Of a stretch of DNA of 64,000 nt, positions 5,639 through 61,392 are shown in pieces; positions within the stretch are counted from its first letter, which is position 1, and each line of letters starts with the position of its first letter. The notes beneath the pieces were generated by a model. The model saw only the letters and a list, made by a program, of their open reading frames with translations, had not been told where the DNA came from and did not search any database. Made by a program: the position numbers and the translations under genes. The DNA comes from Piromyces finnis finn (Eukaryota > Fungi > Neocallimastigomycota), in contig MCFH01000030.1 of NCBI GenBank assembly GCA_002104945.1, positions 567,783 through 631,782 on the forward strand. The letters run 5' to 3'.

Positions 5639-8599
5639 ATGAAGGCATTTTTATTTATCCCATTTTTAGGTAAATAACAATATATATTTTTTTTTCTTTG
5701 TTATATGTTATATATTTTCATTTCAAAAATAACATTATTAATATAATTCATTTTTAATATAATTGTAGTATCCACTGTATTAGGTGGTTTCTTAAGTGGT
5801 TTAGACAGAACATTTGATGAAGTTGAATCAAAAATAATTGACTTATATGTCACTTTACCAACAAGTCAAGTTAATAGTTTAATATCTATGACTCAAATTT
5901 CTCAATCTAAAGTTCAAAGTGTTGGAGCTAACAATATTCCTGATTTTTCATATGATGATGCTACCATCGTTGTAAAATGGAATGGGTATATATATTATGA
6001 TCATAAATTTATTCTTGAAAATAAATTAAAAGTATTTTTAATACTTATACTTTTTTTTTTTTTAAAAAATAATAAATATAAATAATTTAATGATAGAAAT
6101 TCTAAAACCTTTGATAAAGTAACTTTTAAAACTGGTGGTATGTATGGCCGTTCCTATGATAAAGTTGGATTTAATCTTAAATTCGATAAGAAATTCTTAG
6201 GTCGTAAAAGTTTCAAGCTTAGACCAGATAGTGGTGATGCTAGTAAAATCCGTTCCAAACTTTGTTGTGATATCGTTAACAGATTAGGTTTACCATCTAT
6301 TCAAGGAACTTATGCTAGACTTTACATGAACAATGAATTCTGGGGTTTATACGTTTTTATGGATTCTCTTAAAACATCATGGATTAAGAATACTTTCAAT
6401 CCATCTGAAAAAGAAGTTACTACTTTATATCAATGTAAGAATGGTGGTTTTAATTTTAGATCTTCTTCTTCTTATGCCTGTATTAATGCTAATGATGATT
6501 ATCCAGATATGACTGAATTCAAGAAATTTATTAATGACGTAAACAATGCTAAATCAGTTTCTGAAATTGAAAAAATTATGGATGTTGATGGTTTCTTAAA
6601 ACACTTAGCTTTTGAATGGTTAATTGGTTCTTTTGATCATTTCTTATATTACGGTCATAACTTTGTTTGGTACAAGAGAGAAAGTGATGGTAAATGGGTT
6701 GTTATATACTACGATTTTGATAATACTTTTGGTAATGGTGTAAGCTCTTCTTTATGGTCTAATAAGGGTTTGAATCAAGATGGTACTGGTGCTAATCGTG
6801 GTAATCAACCTGTCAATTATACTTTTGCTGACTGGGAAAACAATATTCCAATTCTTAAAACTTTAGTTTACCAAAATAAAACTAAATTTAAGCAAATTGT
6901 TCGTGACGTTTTAGTTCAAGCTTTCAATCCTACCCTCTTAAATTCTCGTATTAATGAAATTAAACAATTTATTTCTCCATACGTCAAAGAAGATTTTACT
7001 CCAAACTCAAATGGAAAATACCCAGGAAGAATCAATAACTCTGGTTCTAAGACTTCTACTTCTTACAGTTATTTCGAATATAATATTGAAAACAGTCTTA
7101 AGACTTGGATCAAAACAAAGTTTGAAGTTGCTTGTTCAAACTATGGTTTTAGTCAAAGCGAAATTTTAGCTGAATCTTCAAAGTTCACTCCAAAACCATA
7201 CAACTATGGATCTAGTTCTTCATCTACCGAACAACCAAAAACTACTACTACCAAATCATCCACTTCAACCACCCAATCAACTAGTTCTGGAAAGAGATAC
7301 GATATTATCAAGGAAGGATCCTCAAAGATTTCTGTTGAATGGGAAGATTGGTCATGGGGTGTTGAAAGTAGTAGATTCAATTCAAAGGGTGAAATGGCTA
7401 ATAATATTGTTGCTGGTAAGTGGGGAGGTGTTTCCTTTAAGAGAAATGACGGTGCTCAATTAGGTTCTGGTACTTTACACTTTATGGCTAGAACTAATGA
7501 TACCTCTGCTACCCTTCAAGTCTTATTACATCTTAGTGAAGTTGACGAATATGTTAGTGCAGGTAATGTTAAGAGTACTTCAACTTCTAAATTAACAGAA
7601 TTCAATGTTGCTATTGAAGAACCATCTGCTGGTAAATATGATAGAATTACAATTCAAGATGCCAATAATAAGGGTCTTATATTATATCTTAACGACGTTT
7701 ACTTTATTGATGGTGCTTCCACTACAACTACTACAACAACTATTAAGACAACAACTACCACAACTGTTAAGAAGACAACCACTACTACAACTACTGTTAA
7801 GCCAACTACTACAACAACAACTGTCAAATCAACTACTACCACAACTGTAAAACCAACTACTACAACTACTACTAAAAAGACTACCACTACTACTAATACT
7901 CCAGAACCAACCAGTACTGGAAAGAGATACGATATTATCAAGGAAGGATCCTCAAAGATTTCTGTTGAATGGGAAGATTGGTCATGGGGTGTTGAAAGTA
8001 GTAGATTCAATTCAAAGGGTGAAATGGTTAATAATATTGTTGCTGGTAAGTGGGGAGGTGTTTCCTTTAAGAGAAATGACGGTGCTCAATTAGGTTCTGG
8101 TACTTTACATTTTATGGCTAGAACTAATGATACCTCTGCTACCCTTCAAGTCTTATTACATCTTAGTGAAGTTGACGAATATGTTAGTGCAGGTAATGTT
8201 AAGAGTACTTCAACTTCTAAATTAACAGAATTCAATGTTGCTATTGAAGAACCATCTGCTGGTAAATATGATAGAATTACAATTCAAGATGCCAATAATA
8301 AGGGTCTTATATTATATCTTAACGATGTTTACTTTATTGATGGTGCTTCCACTACAACAACTACCACCATTAAGAAAACTACTACTGTTAAAACTACAAC
8401 TACTGTTAAGACTACAACTACAATTAAGGCCACAACCACTACTGCTAATTCAAAGCCAACCAATGGTTGTACTGAAATTACTAAAGGTTATTATCCATGT
8501 GGTGGTTTACTTTATCCAGATGCTTCTCCATGTTGTGAAGAAGGTTTCAAATGTGAAGTAGTCAATGAATATTTCTCAATGTGTTCATTAATCATTTAA
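5639..8599 (+). CDS. cotH: Secreted CotH-family atypical kinase with 2x CBM29, Thr-rich linkers and C-terminal CBM1-like module (916 aa)
   Basis: Exons 5639-5669, 5769-5985, 6097-8599 join in frame through GT-AG introns; signal-like N-terminus MKAFLFIPFLVSTVLG. CotH motifs KTGG..GRS, KLRPD..DA, D(HFLYYG)HNF, YDFDNTFG. Two modules with WSWG, GKWGGVSFKR, YDRITIQDA match CBM29; C-terminal CGG..Y...CC..GF.C...NEYFS.C matches CBM1. Confidence 0.88.
7287..8358 (+). repeat. Intragenic 442-bp direct repeat (7287-7728 and 7917-8358) encoding the two CBM29 modules
   Basis: Offset 630 bp; I count 3 differences (GCT/GTT, CAC/CAT, GAC/GAT). Confidence 0.95.
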
Positions 8600-9299
8600 A
8601 CGAAAGAAATCATAATAGAAAATTAATGAAAAACTAATCATTTATATAGAAGTAAATATAACTGGCTTATATAAATATATAAATGAATTATCTTTTTATT
8701 TAATTGTTACTTTTATTTTTATTTAAACATATAAATAATCATATAAATAATATAAATGATATAAATAATAATAATATAAATAATAATATAAATAACAATA
8801 ACAATATACTTATTGATATAATTAATAATATAATTAAAAATATAATTAAAAATATAATTAATAATAATAATTATAATTATTATAATGATAATTAAACGTA
8901 TATAATAATATAATATATAAAATATATTTAGTAGTCATTATTAATTACATAAATAAATATCTATTAGTAAATATGTATAAAAAATTATCAAAAAGAATAT
9001 TAATAAAATAAAGCATAAAAAACATAAAAAAAAAATATATAATAAAATAAATTAAGAAAATTTTAAAAACTCTAAAAAACTGTGAAATTAATTTTTTTAT
9101 AGCCATATGAAATGCTTATTTTTGGTGTTAATAAAATGCTACTATCGCTATTAAATTTATCAACTTTAAAGATGGTATAATGTGAAATATTTACAGATTT
9201 TTTATGTTGAAATTTATTTTTATTTATTTAATATTTTTATTTTTTATTAATTTAATATATTTTTAAATGTTATTATGTACAAGGTCATCATCCTTGTAT

Positions 9300-11115
9300 A
9301 TCCCTCTTGGAGGATACTTAAAAAAGATGCTTAGAAGAGTTAATGAATGGGCCTTGTATAATGAAATGGAATTTGGTATCCAGAAATGTTCAACGATGGT
9401 GATTCGTCCTGAATCAATAGAAAATCAGAACAAGAGAGATCCAACATTTTACTTAGCAGGACAACCCATTCCAACTACTGATTGTTATACTTATCTTGGT
9501 GTTCCATTTGATAAGAATCTGTCCCTTAAACCAGTTATTAAAGCTCTTAATAACAAGGTTTTGAAAGGACTTTTCTCAGTCAGTAAATTCTTAAGAAATC
9601 CTAATATTCCTATTCCTTTCAAAAAGCTAGTACTTAACTCACAAGTGATTAGCAGAGTTTCATACTTTGCACCATTACTTGGATCCAACAAAACTAGGTC
9701 TAGGATTGCTCAGAAGCATGTTAACAAAGGAATACGATGGGTTGCCGGAGTTCATAAAGCCGTATCGTTTATATCTTTATACTCTATCTCAAAAGATTTG
9801 AATATTCCTCCATTGTCAGCCAAATGTGCGTTAGCTCAGGTTAGATGTTTTAACAAATGGAAAAACTCGAATTGTATTATCTCACACCTTGTCAATTACA
9901 TTCCTAAATTTAGAAAATACACGTGGTGCAAATCAAGTAGGACACTTGATAAAAAACTAAAGAAACATGGAGATGTTAAAGCAATTAAAAACTTTTATTG
10001 GAAAGATCTCAAAGGGAATTCAATCAAAGCGCAATATTATGATGATAATAAATTTAGTGAAACTAAAGATTTTATTAAATTATGTTATGAATACCCAGAG
10101 TTTGCCTATGGCTTCTACTGGCTATTGAAAGCAAGAAGCGGATACAAGTTGGATGCTAGAGTTGCCAAAGCTGCTAAATTTGTTGATCCAGTTTGTCCTA
10201 ACTACTGTCCATGTTGCAAGTGTGGTGTTCAAAGTATTAAACATTGGTTATTAGATTGTCCAACATTTAGAGATATCCGTATTAAGCATTATGATTCCAT
10301 AGTCCAGCTACTAAATTTTTTCAGTCAACGTATTTCCAATAGTCCTATCAATAATAATGAAAATGTTAATATCAGTAGAGATAGCAATAACAGTAATAGT
10401 AATAGTAACAATAGTAGTAATAACAATAGTAGTAATAGAAATAATAATATTAGTAATGATAGCAATAGTGAAGATAATAATTCTAATTTAGATAGTAATT
10501 TAGTTAATGATAGTAATAGTTCTAATAATCCGGTGAATATTAATGTGTATGATTATTCTAGTGTGTGCAGTAAAATATTTAAATTCCTTCTTGGGGGAAG
10601 AAGTTTTAACAATATTAATTACAATTCAAGGGAATGGAAAGAACTTTGTAAGCGTCAGATTCAATCTGGTACTAACGAAGGAACACCATTCTTGACGGTA
10701 ACCGCGGAACTTCTAACCAAAATCATGCCTTTTGCTATTGGCTAGCAATGGTCAATGTTCAAAAGGTTTGAAGCAACATCCAAGAGCGTCAATGCTGAAG
10801 AAACAGTAAGACAGGCCAGGAGGGCCAGCGCAACCAATGGAGATCATAATTTTGTTCCATGACAAAATTTTGATCTTTGGCTCGGTGTCCCATTGGAAGT
10901 CAAATACAATTATTATACTTTAGTATGATAGTGGCTTTCTTACTTTAATTAAAATTACTAGAATACATTATACCCAATTTTTATTCATTTGTGTTTATTT
11001 AAACATATTTTATTTTTATTTTTATTTTTAATTTTTTATGTAACATGTATTATAATTTTAATTAAATTAATAATAAAGTTTAAAATATTTGATGCCATTA
11101 AAAAAAAAAAAAAAA
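9300..11115 (+). mobile_element. LINE copy B, 5'-truncated, with poly(A) tail and target-site duplication
   Basis: Starts just after the LFADDI region; A16 tail 11100-11115; TSD TCATCCTTGTAT at 9288-9299 and 11116-11127. ORF 9267-10745 is the LINE C-terminus with a fortuitous flank-derived start. Confidence 0.96.
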
Positions 11116-11271: not shown

Positions 11272-11524
11272 AATATTATATTTATTAATATTTTTTTTTC
11301 AAGAATGATAGTTATGTGAATAAATAAATGAGTACAATAAATTATTGAAATATTATAAAATACAGAAAAACTATTATTGTAATGTGATTCAATTATATAA
11401 AAGAAAATGAATAATAACAAAGAAAAATAATTAAAAAATAATTTTTATATTAAAAGGATATTGATAATAAACTATTTTTATAATAGAGGTTATTTTTTAA
11501 TAATAATAATAAAAAAGTTTCATC

Positions 11525-14500
11525 TTATTTTATTTCGTAAAGTTTAGTTTTGAAGTTTTCAATCATTTTAATAATAATATTATGTTGATAATCATTATAG
11601 TAAGAATCACGTATTTGTATTAATTTTAATTCATTCAAAAAGTATTCTAAAAAGTTTGTAAATACAGTTTTGTGAATAAAAGGTGGAGATAAGCTAGGAT
11701 TTTTATTGGAAGTTATCCTTGAGTAATAATTAGCCCAAAGCTGATCAATATGATTCATTATAAATTTTGAATAAGGTTCTATTTCTGATCCCAATTCATT
11801 TTTAATAACCGATAGTTCGAATAAACTTGACAAGAATCGTTTGAAAAAGAAAAATTTTAGAAGAACTATAAAATATTTATTTTCTATTTCGATATAATTT
11901 ATTCTTTTATTTGACTCTTCTTTCTAACTTTGTAATAATAGCTATAATGTTCGGTATTGGTATTATGATTCAAGTTTTTGTATTTCATTAGAAGCATTGG
12001 TTTAACAAAGGATTCATCCTTTGAAAATATTACTTTTGCCTTTCCTGGTTGACCTTGTCTACCAGCTCTGCCAATACCTTGATATTCTATTCTTGAATTT
12101 TGTGGAAAGAAACCTAAGATGACGTATAAACCACCAACTTGTAATGCTTCTTTACTTAGTATAATATCTGTTCCTCGACCTGCAGCATTTGTAGAAACTA
12201 ATATATTTCCAATATTTCCAGACTTTTCTAGTATATACTCTTCTTTCTCTTTCTGAGCATCATTTAATACTAAATTACCAATCCCTAGTCGATTTAATTT
12301 CATTGAAAATTCTATGCTTTCATGAATATTTTCTAATAGAATTAACATTGGTTGCTTCAATGTATTATTTCTAATCAATTTAATAATTCTCTGATATTTT
12401 TGTTCCTTTGTCTGATAAATTTCTGGTTCTTCTATGATCAATTTTTCTTTAAAATTTCTTGGTAGATTATATAACTCAACATCATATAGTTTACTAATCT
12501 CTCTTTTTTCTATCTCTTCCCCAATTGTGCCAGTTAATCTAAATATGGTTTGATAGTTTTGGAAATAAATTGGATGTGAAATAGATCCAATGACGGAAGT
12601 TTCTTCCTCAGGAGTTAATCCTTCTTTAATTACAACAAATTCATGAATACTTCTATTCCATTTAGAGCCATATTGAATTCTACCAGTATTACTCGATATA
12701 ATCTGAATTTCTTTTTTTTTGTAATTCTTCATTAAATCCAATAATATAATCTTCATTTAGTTTTTTATTCATGGCTATTTTTACAGCATTGATCCATTCG
12801 TTAATCTTTTCATCTTTAATTTGGTGCAATTGTTCCCGATGAATTCCATCTTCGAACGTACTTAATATTTTTCTAATGGTAGGGACATTTGGATTCATTG
12901 CGGTTTTTACATAATCAAATATTGGACCGTAAACCCAATTATAGTGATATTGAGAATTATAAGCGATGTTAGCACTATTTAATGATGTATCTATAAAAAG
13001 ATTATCACACTCATCCACAATAGCAACGTGATATTTTCTTTCTACTAATTCATTTTTGCCTAATGGTTGTGTCCTATTTTTATTTTGAATAAATAGTCCT
13101 TCTCTTAGTAGGGTAAATTCAAAATCTGTATTTGTTCCATATAAAATTATACCATTGTAATCTTCTTTTATTAGATATTGTTTTGCTAAGTTACTGGAAG
13201 AAACACCAAAAAGAGAAAATAATTTTTTGAATTTAATTTGATCTCTTTTAGCAAGATAATGAGTGGATGTTATAACATCTACAAAATAACCCATTAATGC
13301 ATTAGACAATGCAAGTATGGCTATAATCATACTTTTTCCTTCTCCAGTTTTAATTTGGGCAATTCTTCCATGATTTGTTTTCTTTTTATAGTGAATTAAA
13401 AATGATGCAATAGCTAATATTTGAATTAAATATGGAGTATAATTCAAGGTTTCTTCAAATCCTCTCGAAATAATAGCTAATAATTTTGCTATATTTTTCA
13501 ATGTTGGATTATATTTAAATTCTTGTCCTATTTGCCTACCTAATTCACTAAAGTTTTTACATGTATTGTATTCGGTGTAGTAGGTATTGAAATGGAGGGC
13601 AATTTCTTTTAACATAAACTTATCATTAAATTCAATTTTATCAAGTAGACTATCCAATTTATCGACATAGTTATAAAAATTAAATTCAGGTAATTTATTA
13701 AGTTTATTGAATTTTATAATAATATTGCTAATGCTTTCTGATTTGGTATTTAATATCTTTGTTGCCATTTTAATATCTCTAAATTTTATAATGTAGAGTT
13801 CAGTAGCCTTGACCAAGGATAAGAATTCTTTTGAAATAGTAGAGTTTTTATCGAGTAATTTTTTCATCGACTCAAATATATCTATTTTTTCACCCACAGT
13901 TAATTGTTCAGAGTTTTTGATGTACTGGTCACATTCTAAAGCTATATTTAAGGATTCAGAACCGATATTTTTGTTAGATAATACTTTTTGGATGAAACAA
14001 TCAATAGGTAATAAAGAGTCAATACTTTTATGAATAATAGGATATTTTTCTAGATAGTCATTGATTTCTTCTTCATCAAGCAATGGTGGAATAAAATGAG
14101 CATATTTAATATGAATATATTTCATACTACTTTTCTTTTTGCAAATTTTTAAAAGATTATTAATGAAGGAATAAGCAGAAATATTAAACCGTATGGATTT
14201 AAGATTTTTAAAGATTGGATAAGGATCACATTCAATAATTAACCTAAACCCCTTAATAGTAGAAATTAAATCACGAATTTCAATCTTTGTCTTTGATTCA
14301 AAAGCGGAAAGGATTATTGCTCGAATAATTCGAACAAAGTCAAAAGTATTTTTACAATCATTACATAATAAGAATAGGTTATTCATTTCATTTAATATTA
14401 CTTCAACATACTCAGGGTCTACTTTATATAATATAAAATTTAGAAATAGATCACAAATTTCAATGACATATTTGTTATTATTAATATTGGCTATGGTGGT

Positions 14501-17500
14501 GAAAAATTTATCAATGAAATCATTTCTGTTAAACGCATTCCATTTAATAAAAGCCAACAATGCATTAAGATTTCCGATTAGGGAATGATATTGAATATAT
14601 AGGTCTTTAGTGAAATATTTTGAAACATATATCATTGCTAAGGATGAATTAAATTCTTCAAATGTATCCGTGTTGTGGATTTTTTGATTTTCCAATTCTT
14701 CCTGTTGTGAACTGTTGTTCATTTGGGTTTCGGGTGATACCTTATCTTTTATATCCATGATTTTTTCTTCTATAGGTTTTTTCTTATTATAAATAATGTC
14801 ATAATATTTTTTTCTAACTCTTGATTTGATAGCATTTTCATTATTATAATAGGTGATGAATTGATTCAATTCAAGAGATATTTCAGAGATGCTTCTATTT
14901 TTTATATCATTCAGAGATAAATTATGGTATTCCATAAAAAGTTGGGCTATTTCAAATTGATTAGATTTTATGGAAAGTTGGAGGGGCGTAAGATTATTAT
15001 TGTTTTTAATACGTATTTCATCGGTAGTATCAAGAGAGGATAGGAATAGAGCAATCATTGAAAATAAACCAAATTCCGAAGCAATATGTAATGGTGTATT
15101 TCCTTCCTTATTTTTAGTTGTAAGTAATTTAAAACTAAATTCTCCATTTATTTTTGATAATATTTCACTGGCACAAGATACACTGTTAGAATAACAACAT
15201 AGGTGTAAAACGTTATTTCTATACTTATTTTGGGATAATAATTCTATATCAGAAAAAAGAAATAAATTAATCATACTAGGCTGATTATTGATACAACTTA
15301 TCATTAGTATATTATTCATAGTTTCATCGGAAAAACTATTTAGTTCATAGATAGAGTAAAGATCAATATAAGATTTTACATAGAATTCAGCATTTGGATT
15401 TTTAATTAATGCCAATAAATGGGATACACTGTAACGATTTCGTAAAACAAAAGGTGAGTCCATTAAATAGGCAAGTAATTTTTTATTACCATATTCAAGG
15501 CCAATGGATATGGCATCACTGTTGTTTGAATCTTTAAGATATGGATCGGCTCCATATTGCAATAATAATTTAAAAATTTCAGTAGCGGAACATTTTGCAG
15601 CACAATGAATTGGAGTGGAATAAGAATTGAAACGTTTTTTGAGGGAAGGTTCTTCTTTTGGAATAATTTGTAGATTGACATCATAATTTAAATATTCAAT
15701 TAAATATCTTACAGTATTTATTTTATTGGCGTAGCAAGCCTCGTGTAATGAAGAGGTGCTAATGGAATACTTTTCTATTAATTCTGGTGGATAAAATAGA
15801 GACATTAAAAACAAACCAGTATTACATCCAATTCTTGCGGCTAATAAATAAGGCGTTTCTAATTTTCGATTTTGAAGTAAAATATAAGAAGGCCTTTCTG
15901 ATATTACCTTTAATACTATATCATAAAATATATTTATTTCAGAATCGTATTTATCACTTGACAATGGTTCCTTAAAAAGTAAGTGTAAATAGGAATCACC
16001 CTCTTTATTACGCTTTTCAAAATCAATATTAAAGGAATTAATTATTTCATTAGCCAAACCAAAGTTTTTATTTTTAATAAGGTTCATTACTAAAGTTTCA
16101 CCTTCAATATTTTGTTGATTAATATTTAATAATTTGAGATGCTTTTTAAATACTTTATTAAAAGTTGCATTACGGTTTTTTGATAGGATATAAAAAATAT
16201 TTTCGTTGTTATCGCTAAAATAGTCATAAACATAATCATATTTTTCTAAGACATCATTAATATCAAAGTCATTGCTTATATTTGTAAAAAGTACCTCATG
16301 AAAATTCTGAATAATCCTGTCCAGAGCTAATAAAATATAATTAGCTTTTATTTTATTACCAACGTTTAAATGATCAAAATAATCAAAAATTAGAGTTAAA
16401 CTATTTTTAAAATCGAGAGAAAAGTGTATATAATCAAAGGGATAGTATTGATTTTCATCTTTAATAAAAAAGTAGTTTGCATAGTCATCAGGTAATGATT
16501 TCATAGCCCACAAATTATTACTTTTAATAATAAGATGTGGTAAAAAGGTTTTTTCTTTTGTTAATTCAGACAATCCAATATTTATTAACTTTAATAAATT
16601 AGTTAATCGAGAATGTTTTATCGATTCATTAAACCTTTCATTTTCTGATAATAAATTTTCAATAGATGCTAGTGTTTCGCGATAATGTTGATACTGATTA
16701 CTGTTAAGAAGAGAAGGGTAAAATTCTGATAGTACGTAAAGGTTATCTTTTCTTGACATTCCTAAATTTTCTAGAATTTCTAAATCCTTTGAGGATAGTT
16801 TTTTATGATGTAGTATGAGCATTTTTTTGAATACCCCTGGACGACAGAATTTAATTGCTGTATATAAATCAATTGTGGATAAATCAATACATTTAAACAT
16901 TTTCAAAATGATTTCAAAGGACACTAATGTTAAACGAGGTGTTTTACATAAAGGAAGAATGGAGAGACGGAAAGATTTGAATTTTTGTAATTCTAAAATA
17001 TCACATAAAATACCCAAGGATTCCATTTTTTCATTGATAGCAGCTTTACAAATAAGATGGTTTAATATTTTGTACACTTTTTCATCTGCTTTTTGAATGG
17101 TTGTGAATATTACCTTTAACATTTTATCATCGTTTGATTCAATGCAACAATCAAAAATGGTATTTCCGTTATAAACCTTGTTATTATGTGTGAATAAATC
17201 ACATCCATAGCCTAGAGCTTCCTTAATCCAATCGCATAAATTATTTTTTCCAATAAAGGTCATGATAGGATATTCCTTAAGATCTATTAATTGAGACAAG
17301 TATTTAATGGATTCCTTTTTCCTTCCTTTACATGCAGTTTCAATAAGTTCAATACAATTATTAAAGGATTTTAATGGAAGTTCTTCATCCAAATTTGGGA
17401 TCACTTTTTCAATTTCATTAAGGTTTCCATCACTAAAAAGTTTGACCAAATATTTTAATTTATTTTTGTCACCGTCATGATGAGAGTGTACAGAGAGTAA

Positions 17501-20500
17501 GGTATGTTTTAATTTTTCAAGTAATTTTATATTCCTATTTAATTTATAAAGTTGTTGATAACAATCTATTCTACCCGAATATAACGCCATATCAAGACAG
17601 TCGTGATTATAACAATCTTTTGTTAAGGCATTAGCATTATTTCTTAATAATATTTTAGTACATAAAATGGAGTGACTGGAAGAAAGGCAAAGTGGAGTTT
17701 TACCATCTGATCTTTTAACATTAATATAAGGTTTGGCTAAATCAAGATTTAAAATCTCTTTTAGTGTTTCAGCGTTTGATTTTAGACAAACTAAATGTAA
17801 GGGTGTATTTCCATCTTTTTTATCTTTGGCATCAATCTTACTATTTTGTAGTATGAGCCTTTTAGCAATAGTAGGTATATTATATTCACATGCATAATGT
17901 AAAGCTGTCTTTTTCAATTCATTAGTATAATTTATATCACCTATTTTTTCAGGGTAATCTAATAATAAATGAATCATACATTCATCTTTATTTAATATAG
18001 CCATTAATAGCGGTGTAATAGCATTATGGGATGGTAAAGAGAAACGGGAATTCTTTAGTTTTATTAATTTTGAAACCACATCTACATTACCCGTAGTTAC
18101 AGCTATTAATTCAGGAGTAATACCTGAATCTGATACAACATTTAAATCAGAGTCTGTTATTAATTGATCATAACCAAATAAAGCTTTGTAATGTCCTATA
18201 GAATATCCAGATAAATCCTTATCCTCAAGTTGCATATTTTCTTTTGATAGTAATGAATGAATAATTTTATTCTTTTTGACATCGTAGTTCGCTTTGACGA
18301 ATTCGTCTAACGAATCTCCATGGACTGACGACTGAATTAGTTTTGAATTAATACAATAATAGTCTTTACTAGTAGTATTGTTTACTAGATGATAATAAGT
18401 AGAGTCGTCTAATTCTTTTTCGATGAACATCAAATTTTTATTCAATTGAACATGACATCCACCACGTATTTCTATTTTTGATATTTCATCAGAGGAAAGG
18501 TCAAAGCATAGGGATTGCAAATTTAATTTATATTTAAATTTAAGTTTATCTACATTTTCCTTATCTAATGCCTCGAGAACTGTTTTATTTGCTAAATTTG
18601 TTTTTAAATTTTGCATAGCATTTATTAAGTTAGTTTTATAGCAATTTATACTAGTAAATTTAAGTTTTTCATTCAGTTCCTTCTCCATGGAATTTATACT
18701 ATCTTGATATGCCTTTTTATAATGATCTATAATCTCTTTTTCTCTGTTCATAATATTGTTTTTAACTTTTTCTGAATTCATTATTTCTTTCACTTGATGT
18801 AAACAATTACCATTGATACATAATTTTTCTATTTCATTTTTATAATTGCTTTTCATTTTGGCAATAGTTTCTGCTTTTATTTTTTCTAATTCATTTTTAA
18901 AACTAGTTATATTCTTATGGTAGTTTTCAATCAGTAAATCCGTCAACTTTTTTAATATTAAATCAAATTTATTTAATAAATTTGTAACATGTTTATTTAA
19001 TTCTTTTAATGTAGTGGCAGTTTGGAGGATATCCTTTATGTCTTTACAAATCTTATTCATAGTTGTAATATGATATTCATCTATCAATAAATTAATAACA
19101 TCATTTAATTCTATGCAGGCATTTAAAACTTTAGAACATACCAACAAATCTAAGCTTACTGAAAATTTTTTAATAACATCAAAAATAGATAAATCATAAT
19201 CATTTGTGATATCCACAAGATAGGCATCTTTATCAAGTAATTTCTTTAATTTTTCATACATATAGATGACAATTTTTTTTTCAATAGCTTTACTATTTTT
19301 CTCCATTTCTTCTATATTATTAGGCTTTATGTCTGAAATATGGTAACTAACGATATGATTTAAGAAGTTCATTTGACCTTCTGAAAAAATATTTAATAAT
19401 TCTTTCATGGTAACAGAATAGGTTAATTTTATTGTTTTTTTAATAGGCAATGGTGGGAATACATATGGAATATTCCTAATATATTTTTTATTTTTATGAA
19501 GGATAGAACAGGATAAATCGGGAAACATACCACAAGCCTGAACATTTGGTAAATTGTGTAAGCAAAAAGTTATAATATAAAGTAATTCAAAATACGGTTT
19601 AAAGTGAGGAATTGAATTCATTTTTTCTTTTACAAAAGTAGCCATGATTTTATGACTCCTTTCATTATCTGCGATTATATTTTGATTATCTTCATTTTTC
19701 ATTAGGCTAGCTTTAAATTCCGGAGAAACATCTATGTCATATTCAACATCGTAATAACACTTTGGTAAAACAACATCTTTATTATAATATAAAGTTTTAA
19801 TTTTTCCAATGATTCTAAATGCCGATAAAAATAGTTGTCTTTCACAGCCATGATCAGTTTTCATATCATTCAAAGATTGATAAATAATTTTATTCTTGTC
19901 ACCGTATTGGGACAATAGATATTTTTTCATATTTATAAAATGGTGATCTAAATAAGTTTTATCGGTATTTTTAGTATTTTGCCATTCAAATATAAATTCT
20001 TCCTCAAAAAATCCACCATTAACATAACATTTAAGAAAATAGTCCAACATAGTTATTACATGTCCAACCAGTGTATGTTTATAATATTCGTCCATCACCG
20101 AGTATAATAGTCCCTCTTGATTAAAATGAAGTGAAATAAAAGGTAATTTTTTATCTACGAGATATCCTATAGATAATTCGTGCATGATAGTTGAAAAAAC
20201 TTCTTCCATATTGTTAAATTTAACTCCTGGAATTAATAATTTATTGTTCAACAAATTTAAGATGTCATGTTCGGTAGTTTTTGAATATTTATTAAAGGCA
20301 ATGTACAATTGATCATTGAAACAATATCGATTTTTAAACTCTGGTATTATTCTTGGTATGATAAATTCTACTCCACCTGTGTCTCCAGAAGCATTTAATC
20401 CAGCAGCACACATAGCGTTATAGCCAACATTGAACATACACATATCATAAAAAAAATCAATAATAAATTTTATAAATCTTAAACCAATATCACAGAAAAC

Positions 20501-21026
20501 TATACTCATTAGATTGCTTAATATACGAGTCCATTTACCTCCACCAGGACCAGGTCCACCCTTAGGACCATCAGGACCATCAAAAATATTACCAATATAC
20601 TTTCCAAATGTAAAGCCAATGTTGATAAAAAGAAAAGAAAATACTAATTCTCCAAAATCCATAATACCATCTTTGTACTTTTTTTTTTATAAAATTCAAA
20701 ACTCCGTATAATACTCTAGTTGTTCTCCATAGTTTGCCAATAGCATTGTTATATTTTTCAAATATTAATCCAATTTTCTTTAATTTTTTTCTTTTAGATT
20801 TTCTCATAGGAAAAAAATAGTAAACATATTTATATTTTTTGTAATTTTTACCAGTCTTACCATTATTAGAAAAGCTAGTACCTTTTTTATGATTATGATA
20901 TATTAGATTTATATCTTTCAGAATATTACCACAAAACCCAATAAATTCTGTAATATGACCGAAAAGATATTTGTTAGAAAGATATTTAAATGCTTCCAAG
21001 CCATCATTTTTATCAAAAGTATCCAT
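11525..21026 (-). CDS. Giant intronless ankyrin-repeat + SecA-like ATPase protein (~3,166 aa if repaired); three 1-bp frameshifts
   Basis: ORFs 20589-21026, 12689-20662, 11899-12756 and 11525-11833 join with single-base corrections at ~20679-20688, ~12712-12720 and ~11921-11923. Ankyrin units (GNTPLHLVC, KTALHYAC, STPIHCAA, GNTPLHIAS) at ~18130-17560 and ~16080-14940. SecA motifs in order: IAQIKTGEGKS, TSTHYLAKRD, YGTNTDFEF, AIVDECD, TGRIQYGSKW, LTGT, STNAAGRGTDI, GRAGRQGQPG (~13400-11960). Confidence 0.88.
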
Positions 21027-23084: not shown

Positions 23085-24515
23085 TTAAAATTGGTTTTTT
23101 AGACTATATTTTCTAGTGGCTATTTGATCATTGTCATTACTATTTAAATGAATAGCATATTCATTTGAATTTAACCTATCATTTTTACCATTATGTAAGG
23201 TTGAAGCATTTTTTATTATATTATAGGAAAAGTTCATTTCTTCATCAAAATTATTTTGATTCATATTCATATTTTTTATACTGTCTTTTCTATTTTGATT
23301 TAAAATATTATTATAGTAAGAATTGGAAATACTTGTACTACTACTATTATTATTATACTTGTAAAGGGATGTTGATAATCCATTATAAGTTGGAACTGGA
23401 TTTCCATGAATGGAAGTAATGGAATTGTATGAAGCAGTAGGATTAAAGGATGACATTCCTTTGTTATAGGATGATGTAATACTATGGGATGATATTTTAT
23501 AATTTGAATCTTTACGTTTTACATAGAATTTTAATAATATTTGATCAATAAATATAATATAGTAGTTAAAACTTAATACAATATCTAAATAGGTTTGTAA
23601 AAGCGGTGCAATTCCATTACCAAATTGATCTCTATCAACATTTTTATTGAGTATATATTTATATATATGATACAAGATGATCATAGGAATAAGGAATAAA
23701 GATACAATAATTGAACAATAGATACGGTATTCTGAGGTCTGTTTAAATCTTTCCATAAAACTATTTTTTAACATCTTACTGTTATTCATATTTGTTCGAT
23801 TAAAAAGATTTTTTCTCATGACATATAAAATAGTAATATCGTATATTATACTTCCAATAACAATTAATTGATAATCATCAAAACTTATTCTGAACATCTC
23901 CTTACTATACATCTTACTAAAGCAATAAATTTTTAAGGCATTGTAAATGAGGCAAGCAGCGTATACAAATTTTATAGATCTCTTATTTTTTATTACAGCT
24001 TTAGTTCTTAAAGTAGGATACCAATCACCAACCACACTATAAATAATCAAGAATGTATTGAATATTTTTTCTATTATTGAACCACCTGCTTGTGGTGGAG
24101 GAAGATAAGCAGAAAAATTAAATGTAACTTCTTTGACAGCTGTATATAGCAAAAAATTTATATAAAATACTATAATAAAAATACCCATGACTCTTTTCCA
24201 TTTTTTATTTAAATAAAATACCAAAATAAACCATAATAAATAGGTATTACTTGTAAATAAAACCTTAATAATGTATTGCTCAATTGTCATTGGAAGGCTT
24301 TTTTTATTATTATCATGAAAACAATTTAGTATTCCATCAAGATTTTGAAAATAACATTTATTATCAAAAATTATTGGTGAGCCATTATCGTCCACACCTG
24401 GTGGAGGACAATCACCCATACCTGGAGGAGGACCCATGCCTGGAGGAGGACCATCACCCATACCTGGAGGAGGACCCATGCCTGGAGGAGGACCACCACC
24501 CATGAAATCACCCAT
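23085..24515 (-). CDS. Orphan 7-transmembrane receptor-like protein with N-terminal GPPPGM repeats (476 aa, intronless)
   Basis: Seven hydrophobic segments by eye; motifs GDWYPTLRTKA, SEYRI, FIDQILL shared with 29365-30897; Asn/Ser-rich C-terminal tail. Confidence 0.8.
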   Translation of the reverse strand: MGDFMGGGPPPGMGPPPGMGDGPPPGMGPPPGMGDCPPPGVDDNGSPIIFDNKCYFQNLDGILNCFHDNNKKSLPMTIEQYIIKVLFTSNTYLLWFILVFYLNKKWKRVMGIFIIVFYINFLLYTAVKEVTFNFSAYLPPPQAGGSIIEKIFNTFLIIYSVVGDWYPTLRTKAVIKNKRSIKFVYAACLIYNALKIYCFSKMYSKEMFRISFDDYQLIVIGSIIYDITILYVMRKNLFNRTNMNNSKMLKNSFMERFKQTSEYRIYCSIIVSLFLIPMIILYHIYKYILNKNVDRDQFGNGIAPLLQTYLDIVLSFNYYIIFIDQILLKFYVKRKDSNYKISSHSITSSYNKGMSSFNPTASYNSITSIHGNPVPTYNGLSTSLYKYNNNSSSTSISNSYYNNILNQNRKDSIKNMNMNQNNFDEEMNFSYNIIKNASTLHNGKNDRLNSNEYAIHLNSNDNDQIATRKYSLKNQF

Positions 24516-57158: not shown

Positions 57159-60100
57159 TTAAACTCCGTTATCACCGGCTAAAATCATTTCATAATAATC
57201 ACCTTTCTTTTTTAATAATTCTTGGTGATTACCTTTTTCGACAATTCTACCTTCTCTCATAACGACAATAATATCAGCATTTTTAATAGTGGATAAACGA
57301 TGAGCAATGGTAATAATAGTACGTCCTTGGGAAGCTTCTTCTAAAGCGTTTTGAACAACCAATTCGGATTCGGCATCTAAGGCGGAAGTAGCTTCGTCTA
57401 ATAATAATATTTTTGGGCTACGAATAATAGCACGAGCAATGGCAATACGTTGTTTTTGTCCACCACTCATTTGGGATGTACCTTCTCCACCTACTAAAGT
57501 ATCATAACCTTCTGGTAAGGACATGATAAAGTTATGAATATTGGCTTTTTTAGCAGCCTCTTGAATTTCTTCATCACTAGCATCATCCTTACCATAACGA
57601 ATATTATCCTTTATGGAAATATTGAAAAGACATGGCTCTTGACTTACAATACCAATCTGTTGACGTAACCATTTAATATTATAATTTGTATTTTTCTCGC
57701 CGTCAATTTTAATATCACCACATTGGGCGTCATACCAACGTAATAATAAACCAATTAATGTACTTTTACCACAACCAGATCCACCAACAAGAGCTAATGT
57801 CTTGCCTTTTTGTATTTCAATATTTTCACTTCCCATACGTAATACAGTAATATCTGGACGAGATGGATATGAGAAACGAAGTTGATTGAAAGAAACTTTA
57901 CCATTAAATGATTCTTTTTGAATACCCTTTGGATCACTTGCATCAATCTTTGGTTGACGACTGATCATACGAAGGATACGTTTGAAAGCATCTACAGCTT
58001 TAACAAAATCAGGACCAGCAGTACTAGCTTGTCCAATAGTATTAGATGTGAAAATAATAGCCATGACGACTCTAAACATACTTTCAAAATCTAATTCACC
58101 GTTCTTAAGGAAAACAAAACCAAAATAAAATCCAACACCATAGGAAATGAAACTCATTGCGTTACCAAAACCAATTCCAAGACCAGATGTATAATGCTTA
58201 TGTTCAATGCGTTTTTGTGGCTCTACCAAATTATTATCATATAGGGTGGAGAAACGATCTTCTAAGTTAAGAGCATTGACTGTCTTAACTCCAAGAATAG
58301 CTTCAACTGCAATCTTTGTACTATTTTCAAAGATGCGACGTTTTTCATCATTCTTACTTGCCATTTCCTTCATTTGGATGTAGACCCCGATGAAAAGGAA
58401 AGGTGTGAAGGCTAATAAAATTAATGAAAGTTTCCATCCGTGACAGAAAGCAATGACAAAACAAACAATAACACCAGTGATAGTTTCAAGAATGGTTCCA
58501 AAGTTAAGGTTTAAACCTTGAGCTAAAGTTGTTTCAGTTGAAAGTTTAGCCGTTAAAGTACCGACGCTAGTATTATTACTACTATCATTGGAGTTGACAT
58601 TTGTAGAGGAGTTGTTATTACTATCGGCGAATAATTTATCGCCAGTATCAAAGAAACTAATATCTTGTTTAATCATAGAATCATACATTTCTTTACGGAA
58701 AATATATAATAAATATTCACCAGCAGAAGAGAAACCATAATTCTTAAAGTAAGCTGCAATGAAATTAGCAAGTGCTAATACCATAAACATTAAACCCCAG
58801 AATTTGGTACTGTCTAATAAATCATTGCCTTGTTTGTTGAAGGCATTGATAGCAGAAGCGTAGATGTAGGCGCATACAGGTTGCATACAACCGTTGAATA
58901 ATGATCCAATGATACCAATGATATTTTTAAACCAAACAGGTTTATTGTAATCAAGGTAAGGACGACGCCAGTCAATATTTTTAGATTCATTTATAGAAGT
59001 TGATTGAGCTTCGGATCCTGTGCCTTTTTGCTTAACGATAAGTTCAGAATTGGATGAGGCAATGTTTTCAAAATTATCATTAGCATCGGAATATTTTATA
59101 GAATCATCATTAATTTCTTCGGTCATCTCATTGGTTAAATCTTTAGTATTTTCAGCCTTTAATTCTTGGTTCTTGACAAGATGATAGTATGTATTTCCCT
59201 TAGCCATTAATTCTTCATGAGTACCACATTCAACTATAGTGCCCTTATTCATAACGATAATGCAATGAGCATTTCTTACTGTTGTAAGACGATGGGCAAT
59301 AACAATCGTGGTTCTTCCAACCGAAACAGAATCTAAAGCTTTTTGAATAATTTTTTCTGATTGATTATCTAAGGCTGAGGTGGCTTCATCCAATAACAAA
59401 ATATTTGGATTGGAAATTAATGCACGAGCTATACAAATACGTTGTTTTTGTCCTCCACTTAATTGTAATCCCTTTTCTCCAGTCTTTGTTTGATAACCAT
59501 GACTTAATTTAGAAATAAATTCATGAGCATTAGCTAATTTGGCAGCTGTTTCAATTTGTTCTGGAGTAGCACCTGGGCAGGTAATAGCAATGTTTTCAGC
59601 AATAGTAGCATCAAATAAGATTGGTTCTTGTGATACTAATCCAATTTGTGAGCGTAACCATGGAATGTTATAGCCTTCAATTTCTTTACCATCGATTAAA
59701 ATTTGACCATCGCTTTTTTCATAGTATCTTTCCAAGAGTTGAACAATTGTAGATTTACCAGAACCGGAAGCACCTACTAAGGCAATTGTTTGTCCCGGGA
59801 GACATTTGAAATTAATGCCCTTTAAAATTTCGGTATCCGGTCTGGAAGGATAAGTGAAATGGACATCGCGGAATTCGATATGACCTTTAAGAGGTTGGGA
59901 TGGACATTCTCCTGATTCTTTATTAATTTTTGGTTCTCTTTGGATAATGTGGAATAAAATAGCAGCAGCGCCAGTAGCAGCGCTAATAGCTGTGAAAGAA
60001 GTACCACACATACCGAAGGAAGAAGCACCAAACATAACACTCATTAAAATCTTAAGAACATCACCAGCAATCAATTCTCCCTTATTAACAAATTGTCCAC

Positions 60101-61392
60101 CTTTAATAAATGCAATACTGTAGGAAAAGTATGCAACACCAAAAATCAAACCCATACTGATACCTAAAATATGTGATTTTTTCATACCTAACTTTAAGGT
60201 TGGCATTAATTTTTGGGTATAGCGATCACTTTCTTTTTGCTCATTACCGAATGAAACAACAGTACGAGCTTGAGAAAATGTTTCTTGGGCAATACCACCA
60301 GCAGTAGCATAGGAATCTTGAGCCTTTTTAGTGATATTAGCTAAAACAGTACTCATGATGATAACTACAATAGTTACTAAAATGAAAGTTCCTGACATGT
60401 ATAACGATAATTTCCAACCGCTGATAAATGCAATTATCATGCAAAAAACAAATGTGGTAAGATTTTGATATAACATACCAATTTTTGAACCGATACCATC
60501 TTCAATTAATAAGGTATCACTAATTATTCTAGATGATAATTCTCCGGGATTGGCTTTTTCATGCCATGGAATATCTTGTTTCATTAAAGATTTAAAGACT
60601 AAAGAACGTATTTTAGTTGATTGACGAAGAGCTGAAACATCTAAAAAGGCATTATAGATAAATGTGGTGATAAAGGAAACTATGGCAATGACAGCAAATA
60701 AAACAAAATATTTGTATAATTCATGGAAAATATCGTCAACTTTTTTGAATTCAAATCCATTGGTGGCATTAAAATCATAACTAGCATAATCGGATTGTCT
60801 AAAATTATTATAAAGGTTTTGAAGATCATAATTGGGATATTTTTGTTCGAGATTTACAACATTAGTAAGATTACCGGAACTAACCACACTCATTATGTCT
60901 TGCAAAACATTATCATTATCAATCCCTGTAATTTTTTTTAACTTTAAGTTAACAACGAGAGAAATGAAAGAATCTGTCATATCACCTAAATTATAAATAC
61001 TGTAACAAAAGAGTAAATTAGTATCATATTTTTTTTTTTTATTTTAGAATTGATAATTATTAATATAGGTATCATAATTTTCTTTTTAGATAAATAAATA
61101 TATTAATATTAATATTATTTTTTAATATTAATGAAAATTTTATTTATCTCCTGTATCAATGAATATTTAAATAAGCTTACATTAATGGAAAAGCACAACC
61201 TTGAATGATGGAACTTATAATACCAAATAAGGTCATTAATTTTTCTTTCCCATTAGAATATTTAAAAATTTGAGAAAAAGGAATATTTTGGACTTCTTCA
61301 TCACCGAAAATTATCGGTTTTTTTTCTTTTTTTTCCTTTTTTCCCCTATTTTCCTTTTTATTATGGACCTTTTCAGATTTATTTGATTTCAT
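57159..61392 (-). CDS. Full-length ABCB (MDR/P-glycoprotein-like) transporter (1,350 aa)
   Basis: Exons 61392-61181 and 60999-57159. Two TMD-NBD halves with GASGSGKS/LSGGQKQR/LLLDEATSALD and GGSGCGKS/MSGGQKQR/LLLDEATSALD. Confidence 0.96.

Follow-up and report, generated by a model that had tools for sequence, protein, structure and literature searches.

The window analysed here, a 64,000-nt stretch of the Piromyces finnis genome, carries on its minus strand, at 11525-21026, an intronless gene of about 9.5 kb that joins ankyrin arrays to a SecA-like module. Our overall reading, which we consider probable, is that this locus is the sole P. finnis copy of a giant intronless gene of ~3,170 codons, that this copy is a recent pseudogene of ciliate derivation, and that intact members may serve in conflict or as effectors rather than in the Sec pathway. 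The family is large and uncharacterised, with members in Piromyces, in one or more animal-like genomes, and in rumen ciliates, where it is common and diverse. Roles beyond the Sec pathway have barely been explored for SecA, the classic motor of bacterial secretion. The locus leads to a giant eukaryotic family that keeps the SecA clamp and scaffold and joins them with ankyrin arrays, a conserved N-terminal domain (NCD), and interchangeable effector-like heads.

The gene is single-copy in its genome and falls into four open reading frame pieces of 145, 2657, 285, and ~131 aa in differing frames; placing an X at each break gives a readthrough of 3,171 aa. In tblastn searches, orthologs matched the main frame of the P. 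finnis gene at 51-54% identity across ~2670 aa. The initial annotation had described a single protein of ~3,170 aa with no introns. Its length and the lack of introns stand, but the open reading frame is not continuous, being interrupted three times. The features are as follows, from the N-terminal to the C-terminal end.

20679..21026, minus strand: putative N-terminal head, piece A, 116 aa (ORF 20589-21026; frame differs from the main ORF)
20679..20688, minus strand: break i, A10 homopolymer, where the frame shifts from that of piece A to that of the main ORF (sequence and translations)
12689..20662, minus strand: main open frame, 2657 aa (tblastn with orthologs)
20381..20662, minus strand: hydrophobic segment rich in Gly and Pro, placed where orthologs have the glycine-zipper head, degenerate here (alignment)
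19223..20380, minus strand: NCD, ~390 aa (family alignment and AF2 model)
18143..19222, minus strand: poorly conserved linker without Pfam match (conservation profile, Pfam)
17363..18142, minus strand: ankyrin block 1 (Ank_2 1.4e-28)
15863..17362, minus strand: middle region with no assigned fold, its beginning weakly matched by ankyrin (Pfam)
14783..15862, minus strand: ankyrin block 2 (Ank_2 3.8e-30, Ank 7.9e-23)
13634..14782, minus strand: pre-motor region without Pfam match
12721..13633, minus strand: SecA-like module part 1, with N-terminal helices, NBD1, and reduced preprotein-binding region (SecA_DEAD, PDB SecA matches)
13331-13351, minus strand: Walker A, KTGEGKS
12995-13018, minus strand: Walker B, VDECDNLF
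12712..12720, minus strand: break ii, A9 run (sequence; frame switch in tblastn)
11923..12711, minus strand: SecA-like module part 2, comprising the last part of the PPXD and of NBD1, followed by NBD2 (P-loop_SecA)
12163-12192, minus strand: TNAAGRGTDI, in NBD2
12043-12072, minus strand: GRAGRQGQPG, in NBD2
11922..11923, minus strand: break iii, 13-nt deletion (DNA alignment against ortholog L002)
11525..11922, minus strand: C-terminal ~131 aa, SecA scaffold-like helices (frame differs from NBD2; ortholog comparison)
11720-11752, minus strand: conserved D..W..YYS motif of the scaffold-like helices

The main frame stops at a premature TAA (12689-12691) within the preprotein-binding region, and the frame containing NBD2 terminates at a TAA at 11899-11901. 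Piece A shows a weak likeness to the N-terminus of the ortholog P0002 in the form of short common motifs (not significant by blastp), and we assign it to the gene only tentatively. Two ankyrin blocks followed by a SecA-type motor, as had been proposed at first reading, are confirmed at 17363-18142 and 14783-15862 with the motor motifs in order. The preprotein-binding region is likewise as short as had been described, at ~90 aa and not full size.

The ATPase is of SecA type and is not an ordinary DEAD helicase. Pfam profiles matched the P. finnis motor as SecA_DEAD (3.2e-33) and P-loop_SecA (2.6e-26), with a DEAD match under the cut-off (21 bits vs 26); all of its PDB sequence matches were SecA, the NBD2 part matching SecA2/SecA at 4.5e-33, and hhalign against E. 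coli SecA gave an E of 8.8e-73, with residues 16-598 covered for the N-terminal helices, NBD1, and the preprotein-binding part. Both NBD1 and NBD2 are present with Walker A/B and SF2 motifs, in P. finnis in two different frames. The SecA_PP_bind match is weak and partial (E 0.006 in P. finnis, 8e-4 to 2e-6 in orthologs), and no Pfam match to SecA_SW or SEC-C was obtained in any family member. Modelled with AF2 (pLDDT 91.7), the module of an intact ortholog resembled SecA with a Z of 32.5 and a TM of 0.70, vs Z <=17.4 and TM 0.32 for helicases, so that the SecA assignment of the initial annotation is borne out by profile and fold alike. The best fit by TM-score was to SecY-bound, substrate-engaged SecA (5eul_A, TM 0.70, 614 residues, rmsd 3.5), while M. 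tuberculosis SecA2 (4uaq, solved chain of 705 residues) aligned up to residue 733 with a Z of 31.3 and an rmsd of 3.0. In the ortholog model, the last ~150 aa are predicted to make up the scaffold helices of SecA; the alignment extends to residue 831 of the E. coli protein, although ~200 fewer residues align. The module as predicted has neither wing domain nor C-terminal tail, and its length leaves no room for a wing. The earlier view that the C-terminal scaffold had been replaced by ~170 aa therefore needs amending: ~160 aa do follow NBD2, but scaffold helices are predicted there, and only the wing and tail are missing. In a FastTree phylogeny, all 163 SecA-like rows are set apart, by a branch with a support of 100, from canonical SecA, which was represented by two rows only (E. 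coli and the Volvox chloroplast).

Intact relatives are 3,100-3,470 aa long and colinear over their full length, in the order variable head, NCD, linker, ankyrin 1, middle region, ankyrin 2, and SecA-like module, the last running through NBD1, a reduced preprotein-binding domain, NBD2, and a helical scaffold. The P. finnis gene follows this pattern, with NCD motifs leading to two ankyrin blocks and the SecA-like module. The NCD is recognised in the family alignment by the motifs TGGVEF, VNGGFFxE, FRIIG, PYFELL, and PPLP; its profile matches 39 of the proteins fetched, and the P. finnis genome carries this single copy. The conserved ~390-aa NCD, as modelled by AF2 (pLDDT 85.5), is without a known fold match: Foldseek against PDB returned nothing at E<1e-3, the best hit of a wide structure search (Z 5.5) covered terminal helices only, and in the ESM Atlas the TM was <=0.26, with nothing above 0.79 in a feature search. 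The heads differ among family members, including glycine zippers (in many members), a PPPDE peptidase (6e-6), and a PARP (8.5e-6), by Pfam matches whose scores (E about 1e-6) fall under the gathering thresholds.

The NCD-ankyrin-SecA-like architecture occurs also in an animal-like genome and in organisms of 42-45% GC. Other organisms have a split architecture, one split version adjoining an Ntox28-ankyrin giant; one distant bacterial relative combines a SecA-like domain with NACHT, and Legionellaceae and other bacteria have SecA-like proteins without a wing domain. When GTDB species genomes were scanned using the module alignment, housekeeping SecA (26-32% identity) dominated, and a Tatlockia MAG alone stood out, at 34% identity. 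None of the 48 loci from an IMG/VR scan (25-39% identity) was close. In the literature on SecA with ankyrin in gut fungi or in ciliates, we did not find the family described. The architecture is not a fungal invention, given that ciliates and an animal-like genome have it too and that split forms occur elsewhere.

Our best guess is that the family comprises putative ATP-driven effectors or conflict proteins, and by analogy we infer that the function may be NLR-like or toxin-like. The variation of heads between members makes an effector-like N-terminal part plausible, as the initial annotation had supposed from a single gene. The effector reading is also backed by the split version beside the Ntox28-ankyrin giant, by the bacterium with SecA-like and NACHT domains, and by the SecA-like domains published for Amoebophilus effectors (PMC3482391) and for giant bacterial proteins (bioRxiv 10.1101/2023.11.21.568195). 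PADLOC gave no defence-system match on the SecA-like proteins, with only weak DpdF/helicase matches on NBD2. In the mechanism we propose, the ankyrin arrays of intact members would bind a protein target, and the SecA-type clamp and two-helix finger would grip an unfolded polypeptide and move it in an ATP-driven manner; that polypeptide may be either the protein's own N-terminal part or the captured target. The interchangeable head would act last, inserting into a membrane (glycine zipper), cleaving as a PPPDE peptidase, or transferring ADP-ribose in the manner of a PARP. The ciliate chromosomes carry this one gene alone, so no adjoining immunity gene is possible on them. A more specific scheme, which we offer as speculation and regard as quite unlikely in its entirety, is that intact members are an unrecognised kind of eukaryotic machine, cytosolic SecA-derived motors that thread their own head, be it a pore-forming glycine zipper or an enzyme, across a membrane, or thread a target caught by ankyrins; they would be self-delivering effectors in rumen conflicts, handed on between unrelated eukaryotes, from ciliate to fungus, in the form of one 9.5-kb gene, with the NCD as an essential new fold.

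It is also conceivable, if unlikely, that the module of intact members is a secretion device that exports or membrane-inserts the giant itself, possibly with Sec61, and is not a sensor/effector switch. The predicted module retains the clamp and the scaffold/finger helices, its closest structural fit is to SecA engaged with SecY and substrate, glycine-zipper heads are found in many members, and self-export was proposed for Omnitrophota giants (bioRxiv 10.1101/2023.11.21.568195). However, we saw neither a signal peptide nor a conserved transmembrane domain, and some heads (PPPDE, PARP) are soluble enzymes. Ankyrin arrays are typical of cytosolic proteins. Fungi have Sec61 and are without SecYEG, and we know of no case in which SecA was shown to work with Sec61. 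We retain the effector or conflict role as the preferred reading for intact members.

The copies in P. finnis and in Piromyces sp. E2 both look like recent pseudogenes, judging from their lesions. Break ii is an A9 run with one A beyond the reading frame of the ortholog, a +1 frameshift, and break iii, where 13 nt are missing relative to L002 in the DNA alignment, is a frameshift that does not lie in a homopolymer. Since intact orthologs run colinear straight across both, these are frameshifts and not introns; a short intron (GT...YAG) had been considered at break iii, and was dropped when orthologs proved colinear there and the difference proved to be a 13-nt deletion. The public JGI gene model, P0001, which has 2860 aa and bears the annotation 'ankyrin', is incorrect: it spans the breaks with artificial introns, which mask three frame breaks, and drops the Walker B segment. 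Every piece of the gene is open far beyond chance, at a stop probability per codon of 0.09 in P. finnis, and we take the lesions to be recent for this reason. Family-invariant residues are altered in P. finnis at 21 of 284 positions, compared with 0-10 in the other members tested, and 9 of the 21 changes lie within the motor. Lesions of independent origin disrupt the Piromyces sp. E2 copy: a deletion, a duplication, and a change from CAA to TAA. The motor described as 'complete' in the initial annotation is therefore not so, with three frameshifts in the gene and 21 family-invariant residues changed.

That the P. finnis gene is still functional, either through slippage at A9/A10 that restores the frame or through a 2,657-aa product that works alone, appears improbable to us. 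Breaks i and ii sit in runs of 10 and 9 A, where polymerase slippage could rescue some transcripts; the main frame has 2,657 codons without an in-frame stop, and the Walker A/B and NBD2 motifs are kept. Yet break iii lies outside a homopolymer, so the scaffold helices remain out of frame, and the excess of altered invariant motor residues and the nonsense codon and other lesions of the sister species both argue for decay. The largest possible product is at most 2,657 aa and is without NBD2; to our knowledge, a SecA motor without NBD2 is unable to hydrolyse ATP. Less credible still is the idea that the breaks are long-read assembly errors masking an intact 3,170-codon ORF. Homopolymers are a typical site of long-read errors, and two of the three breaks fall in them. 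However, break iii is a 13-nt deletion, and breaks ii and iii are unchanged in contigs from two sequencing runs of different studies, X1 (9,832 nt, depth 170) and X2 (4,241 nt), each with 0 differences and 0 gaps there. X2 alone counts as independent evidence, because X1 may be the assembly's own source; the nature of X2 (RNA or DNA) is ambiguous, RNA being our guess. This read support covers breaks ii and iii, and break i is a probable indel. The sequence words of the gene were next to absent in three further runs labelled P. finnis, for which an RNA type was guessed. We continue to treat the P. finnis copy as a recent pseudogene.

As to its origin, horizontal transfer from a rumen ciliate is the most likely way in which the gene reached the fungal lineage, as the phylogeny suggests. 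(CCCCAAT)n is the rumen-ciliate telomere repeat (bioRxiv 10.1101/2022.01.05.474053), and such telomeres cap the contigs L003, L011, and L012, which are single-gene chromosomes. The telomere check covered these three contigs, and the other rows called ciliate were assigned by clustering with them. AT-rich contigs of ~10 kb had been taken for fungal, an assignment dropped after ciliate telomeres turned up on them. In the maximum-likelihood tree, the fungi are monophyletic (100/100) and nested inside ciliate groups, which points to transfer from ciliate to fungus, the named fungal genomes in the search being two Piromyces only. An AU test, for a group chosen after the tree had been seen, rejected the ciliates as one clade (p=3.4e-15). 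The horizontal origin that had been thought plausible is supported by this nesting; a direct bacterial origin is not, the probable donor lineage being rumen ciliates. There is a slight chance that the family is instead ancestral in eukaryotes, or that fungi and ciliates each took it up from some other source, for instance an intracellular bacterium. The same architecture in an animal-like genome and in organisms of 42-45% GC fits this, as do the wing-less SecA-like proteins of Legionellaceae and other bacteria. It sits poorly with the fully supported nesting of the fungi in rumen-ciliate groups, with the rejection of a single ciliate clade, with a best bacterial species representative that is only 34% identical, and with a named fungal sample of two Piromyces. 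The transfer from a rumen ciliate remains our preferred account.

The fungal origin of the contig itself is hardly in doubt. Although the closest diverse relatives come from ciliates, contamination of the fungal assembly by ciliate or bacterial DNA is barely credible, as the gene sits within a 631-kb contig beside genes of fungal type (CotH and a eukaryotic ABC transporter) and one for an AMP-binding enzyme, groups with the Piromyces sp. E2 copy, and lies in a window from which the ciliate telomere repeat is absent, so that the possibility of a contig from another organism, raised at first reading, falls away. A comparison of the P. finnis window with the sequences flanking the E2, L002, and L013 loci showed no synteny, which for the two Piromyces loci counts against our account. 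The transfer of a 9.5-kb gene between eukaryotes within the rumen is statistically well supported, and the independent decay that followed in two fungal species is a pattern typical of dispensable conflict genes.

Compared with canonical SecA and mycobacterial SecA2, the family module has the same plan of N-terminal helices, NBD1 with the PPXD inserted in it, NBD2, and a long scaffold helix with finger-like helices, and all motor motifs are present. M. tuberculosis SecA2 is also without the wing domain. Unlike canonical SecA, the module forms the C-terminus of a ~3,100-aa protein, its PPXD is cut to ~90 aa, both a SecA_SW match and the zinc-binding tail at the C-terminus are absent, its branch falls outside canonical SecA (support 100), and its hosts are eukaryotes without SecYEG.

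Wing-less SecA-like ATPases are known from intracellular bacteria, and the P. finnis protein shows the pattern of wing-less SecA in giants and effectors: SecA_DEAD, partial PP_bind, and P-loop_SecA matches, no SecA_SW, and a giant repeat protein. SecA-like domains occur in Amoebophilus asiaticus effectors (PMC3482391), and Legionella fallonii lfa2470 is SecA-like (PMC4256840); these and the Tatlockia MAG (L020) have a wing-less ATPase like that of the family, which there also goes with ankyrin/Sel1 repeat proteins and toxin/effector domains. Unlike the family, the versions of intracellular bacteria are ~1,000 aa long or split over two genes and are <=34% identical, with no NCD in the parts examined. 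Giant Omnitrophota/Actinobacteria proteins carry divergent SecA_DEAD/PP_bind modules (bioRxiv 10.1101/2023.11.21.568195). In both groups the SecA motor is divergent, gives no scaffold-and-wing match in Pfam, lies toward the C-terminal end of a multidomain giant, and is phylogenetically separate from housekeeping SecA. The bacterial giants, in contrast, have many transmembrane helices and carbohydrate-active or adhesion domains, whereas the family is set apart by eukaryotic hosts, ankyrin arrays, the NCD, and variable heads. Polymorphic toxins join a constant body to exchangeable toxin domains; the family may resemble them in its differing heads, which all score under Pfam cut-offs and lie at the N-terminus rather than the C-terminus.

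Fungal NLR/STAND proteins differ in that their NTPase is a central NACHT or NB-ARC, while in the family it is a C-terminal SecA-type SF2 motor preceded by the repeats; no Pfam match to NACHT or NB-ARC was obtained in the P. finnis protein. What the two have in common is that one giant, fast-evolving gene brings together an NTPase and repeat arrays with a head of effector type that is N-terminal and variable. Fungal NLR/STAND genes, too, are often pseudogenised.

The window covers the final 64 kb of contig C157 (631 kb) in the Piromyces finnis genome (56.46 Mb, 232 contigs), and its GC content varies from 13 to 35% along its length. The locus at 11525-21026 on the minus strand consists of four open frames, not one, and its top database match is "ankyrin [Piromyces finnis]" (the public gene model P0001, 97% identity).

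Features of the locus, in the direction of the gene (open frames from the open-frame listing, ankyrin blocks from Pfam)
20589-21026, minus strand, open frame of 145 aa
20679-20688, minus strand, break i, an A10 run
12689-20662, minus strand, open frame of 2657 aa
17363-18142, minus strand, ankyrin block 1
14783-15862, minus strand, ankyrin block 2
12712-12720, minus strand, break ii, an A9 run where the ortholog frame requires eight A
11899-12756, minus strand, open frame of 285 aa
~11923, minus strand, break iii, right after GTTAGA, a 13-nt deletion relative to contig L002
~11922 to 11525, minus strand, open frame, 3'-most piece

By Pfam, many ankyrin repeats make up the two blocks, the large piece ends in SecA_DEAD (3.2e-33), and the 285-aa piece contains P-loop_SecA (2.6e-26), Helicase_C and a weak match to SecA_PP_bind. 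PDB chains matched by sequence are exclusively SecA or SecA2 (the NBD1 piece reaching 1e-14 and the NBD2 piece 4.5e-33), and the motor motifs were all located by coordinate, so that the ankyrin blocks and SecA-type motor described in the initial annotation are confirmed; its length of ~3,170 aa also agrees with the 3,171 residues obtained by reading through with X at every break. SecA_DEAD, P-loop_SecA and a conserved ~390-aa N-terminal domain (NCD) each occur once in P. finnis. Adjoining the locus, an ORF of 819 aa (6140-8599, plus strand) encodes a CotH kinase domain (1.6e-41); the flanking ORFs at 9267-10745 (plus strand, 492 aa) and 23085-24515 (minus strand, 476 aa) have no Pfam match. 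Farther along the window, the minus strand encodes a full-length ABC transporter of eukaryotic type at 57159-60980; an AMP-binding enzyme is encoded at 62284-63594.

When the intact fungal orthologs P0002 (3101 aa) and P0006 (3468 aa) were aligned to the locus by tblastn, both were colinear across all pieces, with frame switches at 12710-12720 and ~11923; because they run through breaks ii and iii while changing frame, these are frameshifts, not introns. The gene is intronless when intact, since L002, an AT-rich metagenome contig without telomeres, encodes P0002 in a single uninterrupted 9.3-kb ORF. The public 2860-aa gene model spans the breaks via invented introns, and even the Walker B segment is lost. 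As for assembly error, contigs from two public runs were compared with window 11401-17400: a 9,832-nt contig from run X1 (depth 170), which may itself be the source of the assembly, is identical to the window within this interval with zero gaps, and so is a 4,241-nt contig spanning 11590-15830 from run X2, a separate study. Therefore, breaks ii and iii exist in the DNA and did not arise from assembly error. Similarity between the 5' piece and the N-terminus of the orthologs is weak, and the assignment of this piece to the giant gene is therefore tentative.

Decay extends to individual residues. The P. finnis copy alters 21 of the 284 columns that are invariant across the 19 other family members compared, versus 0-10 for other members in the same test. 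The motor holds nine of these 21 (e.g., GSRW to GSKW, HEFVEVKEG to HEFVVIKEG, and FGLTGT to FRLTGT), and the glycine-zipper segment is also degenerate. With breaks ii and iii and the altered motor residues, neither the uninterrupted frame nor the complete motor initially reported holds in the P. finnis genome. The lesions must be recent, because every piece is open far beyond chance: at a stop probability of 0.09 per codon, derived from base composition, the chance of an open frame is ~4e-6 over 131 codons and 2e-11 over 264 codons. Among named fungi, Piromyces sp. E2 has the sole other copy (L019, KZ150883.1), and its breaks are at different sites.

Lesions of the Piromyces sp. E2 copy (L019 coordinates)
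near 7245, frameshifting deletion of about six codons
near 7670-7684, second frame change
~10488-10515, tandem duplication
14466, CAA to TAA nonsense codon in NBD2

Comparison of the two sequences indicates that the copies decayed independently. The E2 public model P0004 (2,930 aa) is not translatable as a single frame, and masks a nonsense codon as well as three or more frame changes. The P. finnis locus most likely has no function today. In the P0032 cluster, several ciliate-type contigs of ~9.7-9.9 kb carry the gene split into at least two ORF fragments (one contig of 9,785 nt, for example, has fragments of 601 and 2582 aa), reflecting either frequent frameshifts across the family or metagenome assembly errors.

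The motor was modelled from the intact ortholog (P0002:2371-3101, 94 aligned sequences; pLDDT 91.7, pTM 0.91), and structure prediction, one of the checks first proposed, favors SecA over helicases. The first 36 PDB matches in Foldseek are SecA throughout (E down to 7e-35), with the best TM-score (0.70/0.69) for 5eul_A, a substrate-engaged SecA-SecY complex, and DEAD-box helicases rank after them (E ~1e-9, TM 0.32). VIA gives Z 32.5 for E. coli SecA (model 25-706 on chain 12-831), 31.3 for M. tuberculosis SecA2 (rmsd 3.0) and 31.0 for 5eul_A (614 residues, rmsd 3.5), versus 17.4 at most for helicases, and hhalign places the module profile on E. coli SecA residues 16-598 (E 8.8e-73). Past NBD2, the model predicts a 48-residue helix and then three more, which correspond in the prediction to the scaffold and finger-like helices. 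Because these helices are modelled, space for the wing domain is absent, and SecA_SW and SEC-C have zero Pfam matches in any family member, the scaffold appears to be kept and the wing and tail lost, rather than the scaffold being replaced as first thought.

A protein search identified 65 long relatives, and family conservation peaks twice, in the NCD and in the motor. The NCD has the invariant motifs TGGVEF, LDYxLKxxVNGGFFxE, FRIIG, PYFELL and PPLP (alignment A2), and its AF2 model, which is confident (pLDDT 85.5, pTM 0.81), includes a long beta-hairpin. The model has no match in Foldseek against PDB, in an exhaustive VIA search, where the best Z of 5.5 covered just terminal helices, or in the ESM Atlas, where TM did not exceed 0.26. 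The heads N-terminal of the NCD vary by member: several are glycine zippers, that of P0007 and P0008 is a PPPDE peptidase (6e-6) and that of P0034 a PARP catalytic domain (8.5e-6), all with scores under Pfam cut-offs. The NCD profile also matches several other giants and P0085 (3567 aa, single-exon), whose gene lies next to a ZBED5/hAT-like gene on a 1.37-Mb hifiasm contig that looks like an animal genome. P0006 (L013:2891-13297; also P0005), an intact fungal family member, carries two CBM26 starch-binding modules (Pfam 1.2e-25) ~270 aa past the SecA-like module, which hints at attachment to starch or glycogen granules.

Most close relatives are on ~10-kb contigs containing this giant gene alone. 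L003 is capped by (CCCCAAT)n on one side and by the complementary repeat on the other, and L011 and L012 each bear the repeat at a single end. It is reported as the telomere repeat of all rumen-ciliate macronuclear chromosomes (bioRxiv 10.1101/2022.01.05.474053), and is absent from the window and the fungal contigs. Given the repeat on these three contigs, the only ciliate contigs checked for telomeres, and one gene per contig, we interpret the ~10-kb relatives as gene-sized chromosomes of rumen ciliates. The architecture is also present in rumen ciliates and in the animal-like genome encoding P0085, and is not a fungal innovation. In a full-length ML tree (28 rows, 3,003 columns, LG+G4), the fungal rows (window, Piromyces sp. 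E2, P0002, P0006) form one clade (100/100), sister to the ciliate group P0007/P0008 (94/95), inside a 100/100 clade that leaves out another ciliate group, P0022 and relatives; lying on one side of a branch is a root-independent criterion. Zero bootstrap trees unite the ciliates as one clade, and a tree forced to have such a clade fails the AU test (delta lnL 106.9, p=3.4e-15), for a group chosen after the tree was seen. These results support the suggested horizontal origin, and the simplest reading of the tree would be one transfer from a rumen ciliate to a Piromyces-related lineage.

Beyond this family, 371 clusters passed E<1e-30 in an exhaustive search of representatives, and all nine sampled proteins of ~900-1,500 aa combine SecA_DEAD with a short PP_bind and P-loop_SecA, without SecA_SW. 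A 100* branch separates all SecA-like rows from E. coli and chloroplast SecA in a 165-row FastTree tree with just two canonical SecA rows. A role in the Sec pathway seems unlikely, given hosts without SecYEG and a tree position outside SecA. On L006 (GC 44%), the 990-aa SecA-like gene P0094, one of the nine sampled, lies 14 nt downstream of a >2,762-aa giant with Ntox28 and many ankyrin repeats (L006:1-8973), a two-gene, split form of the fused design. A bacterial contig of 2.0 Mb (L005:6001-19275) encodes a 2,424-aa relative with SecA-like, NACHT and HEAT domains, directly followed by a 3,436-aa ankyrin/TPR giant, and in a Tatlockia (Legionellaceae) MAG, a 1,017-aa SecA-like version adjoins a Sel1-repeat protein. 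In IMG/VR, 48 viral-collection contigs (L100-L147), some of 170-360 kb, have SecA-like matches at 25-39% identity.

Taken together, the preserved clamp and scaffold, ankyrin arrays, interchangeable heads and repeated pseudogenization suggest that intact family members may be ATP-driven effector or conflict proteins, with a motor that would handle unfolded polypeptide from their own head or from a target they capture. SecA-like domains are listed for effectors of Amoebophilus, a symbiont of amoebae (PMC3482391), and for giant actinobacterial toxins (PMC8195603), and self-export has been proposed for bacterial giants with SecA_DEAD/PP_bind but without scaffold and wing (bioRxiv 10.1101/2023.11.21.568195). 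Giant effector-like proteins with a wing-less SecA-like module have already been noted in bacteria; the family described here is a eukaryotic form of this kind, and adds to the bacterial cases the fold-unmatched NCD and a well-supported ciliate-to-fungus transfer.
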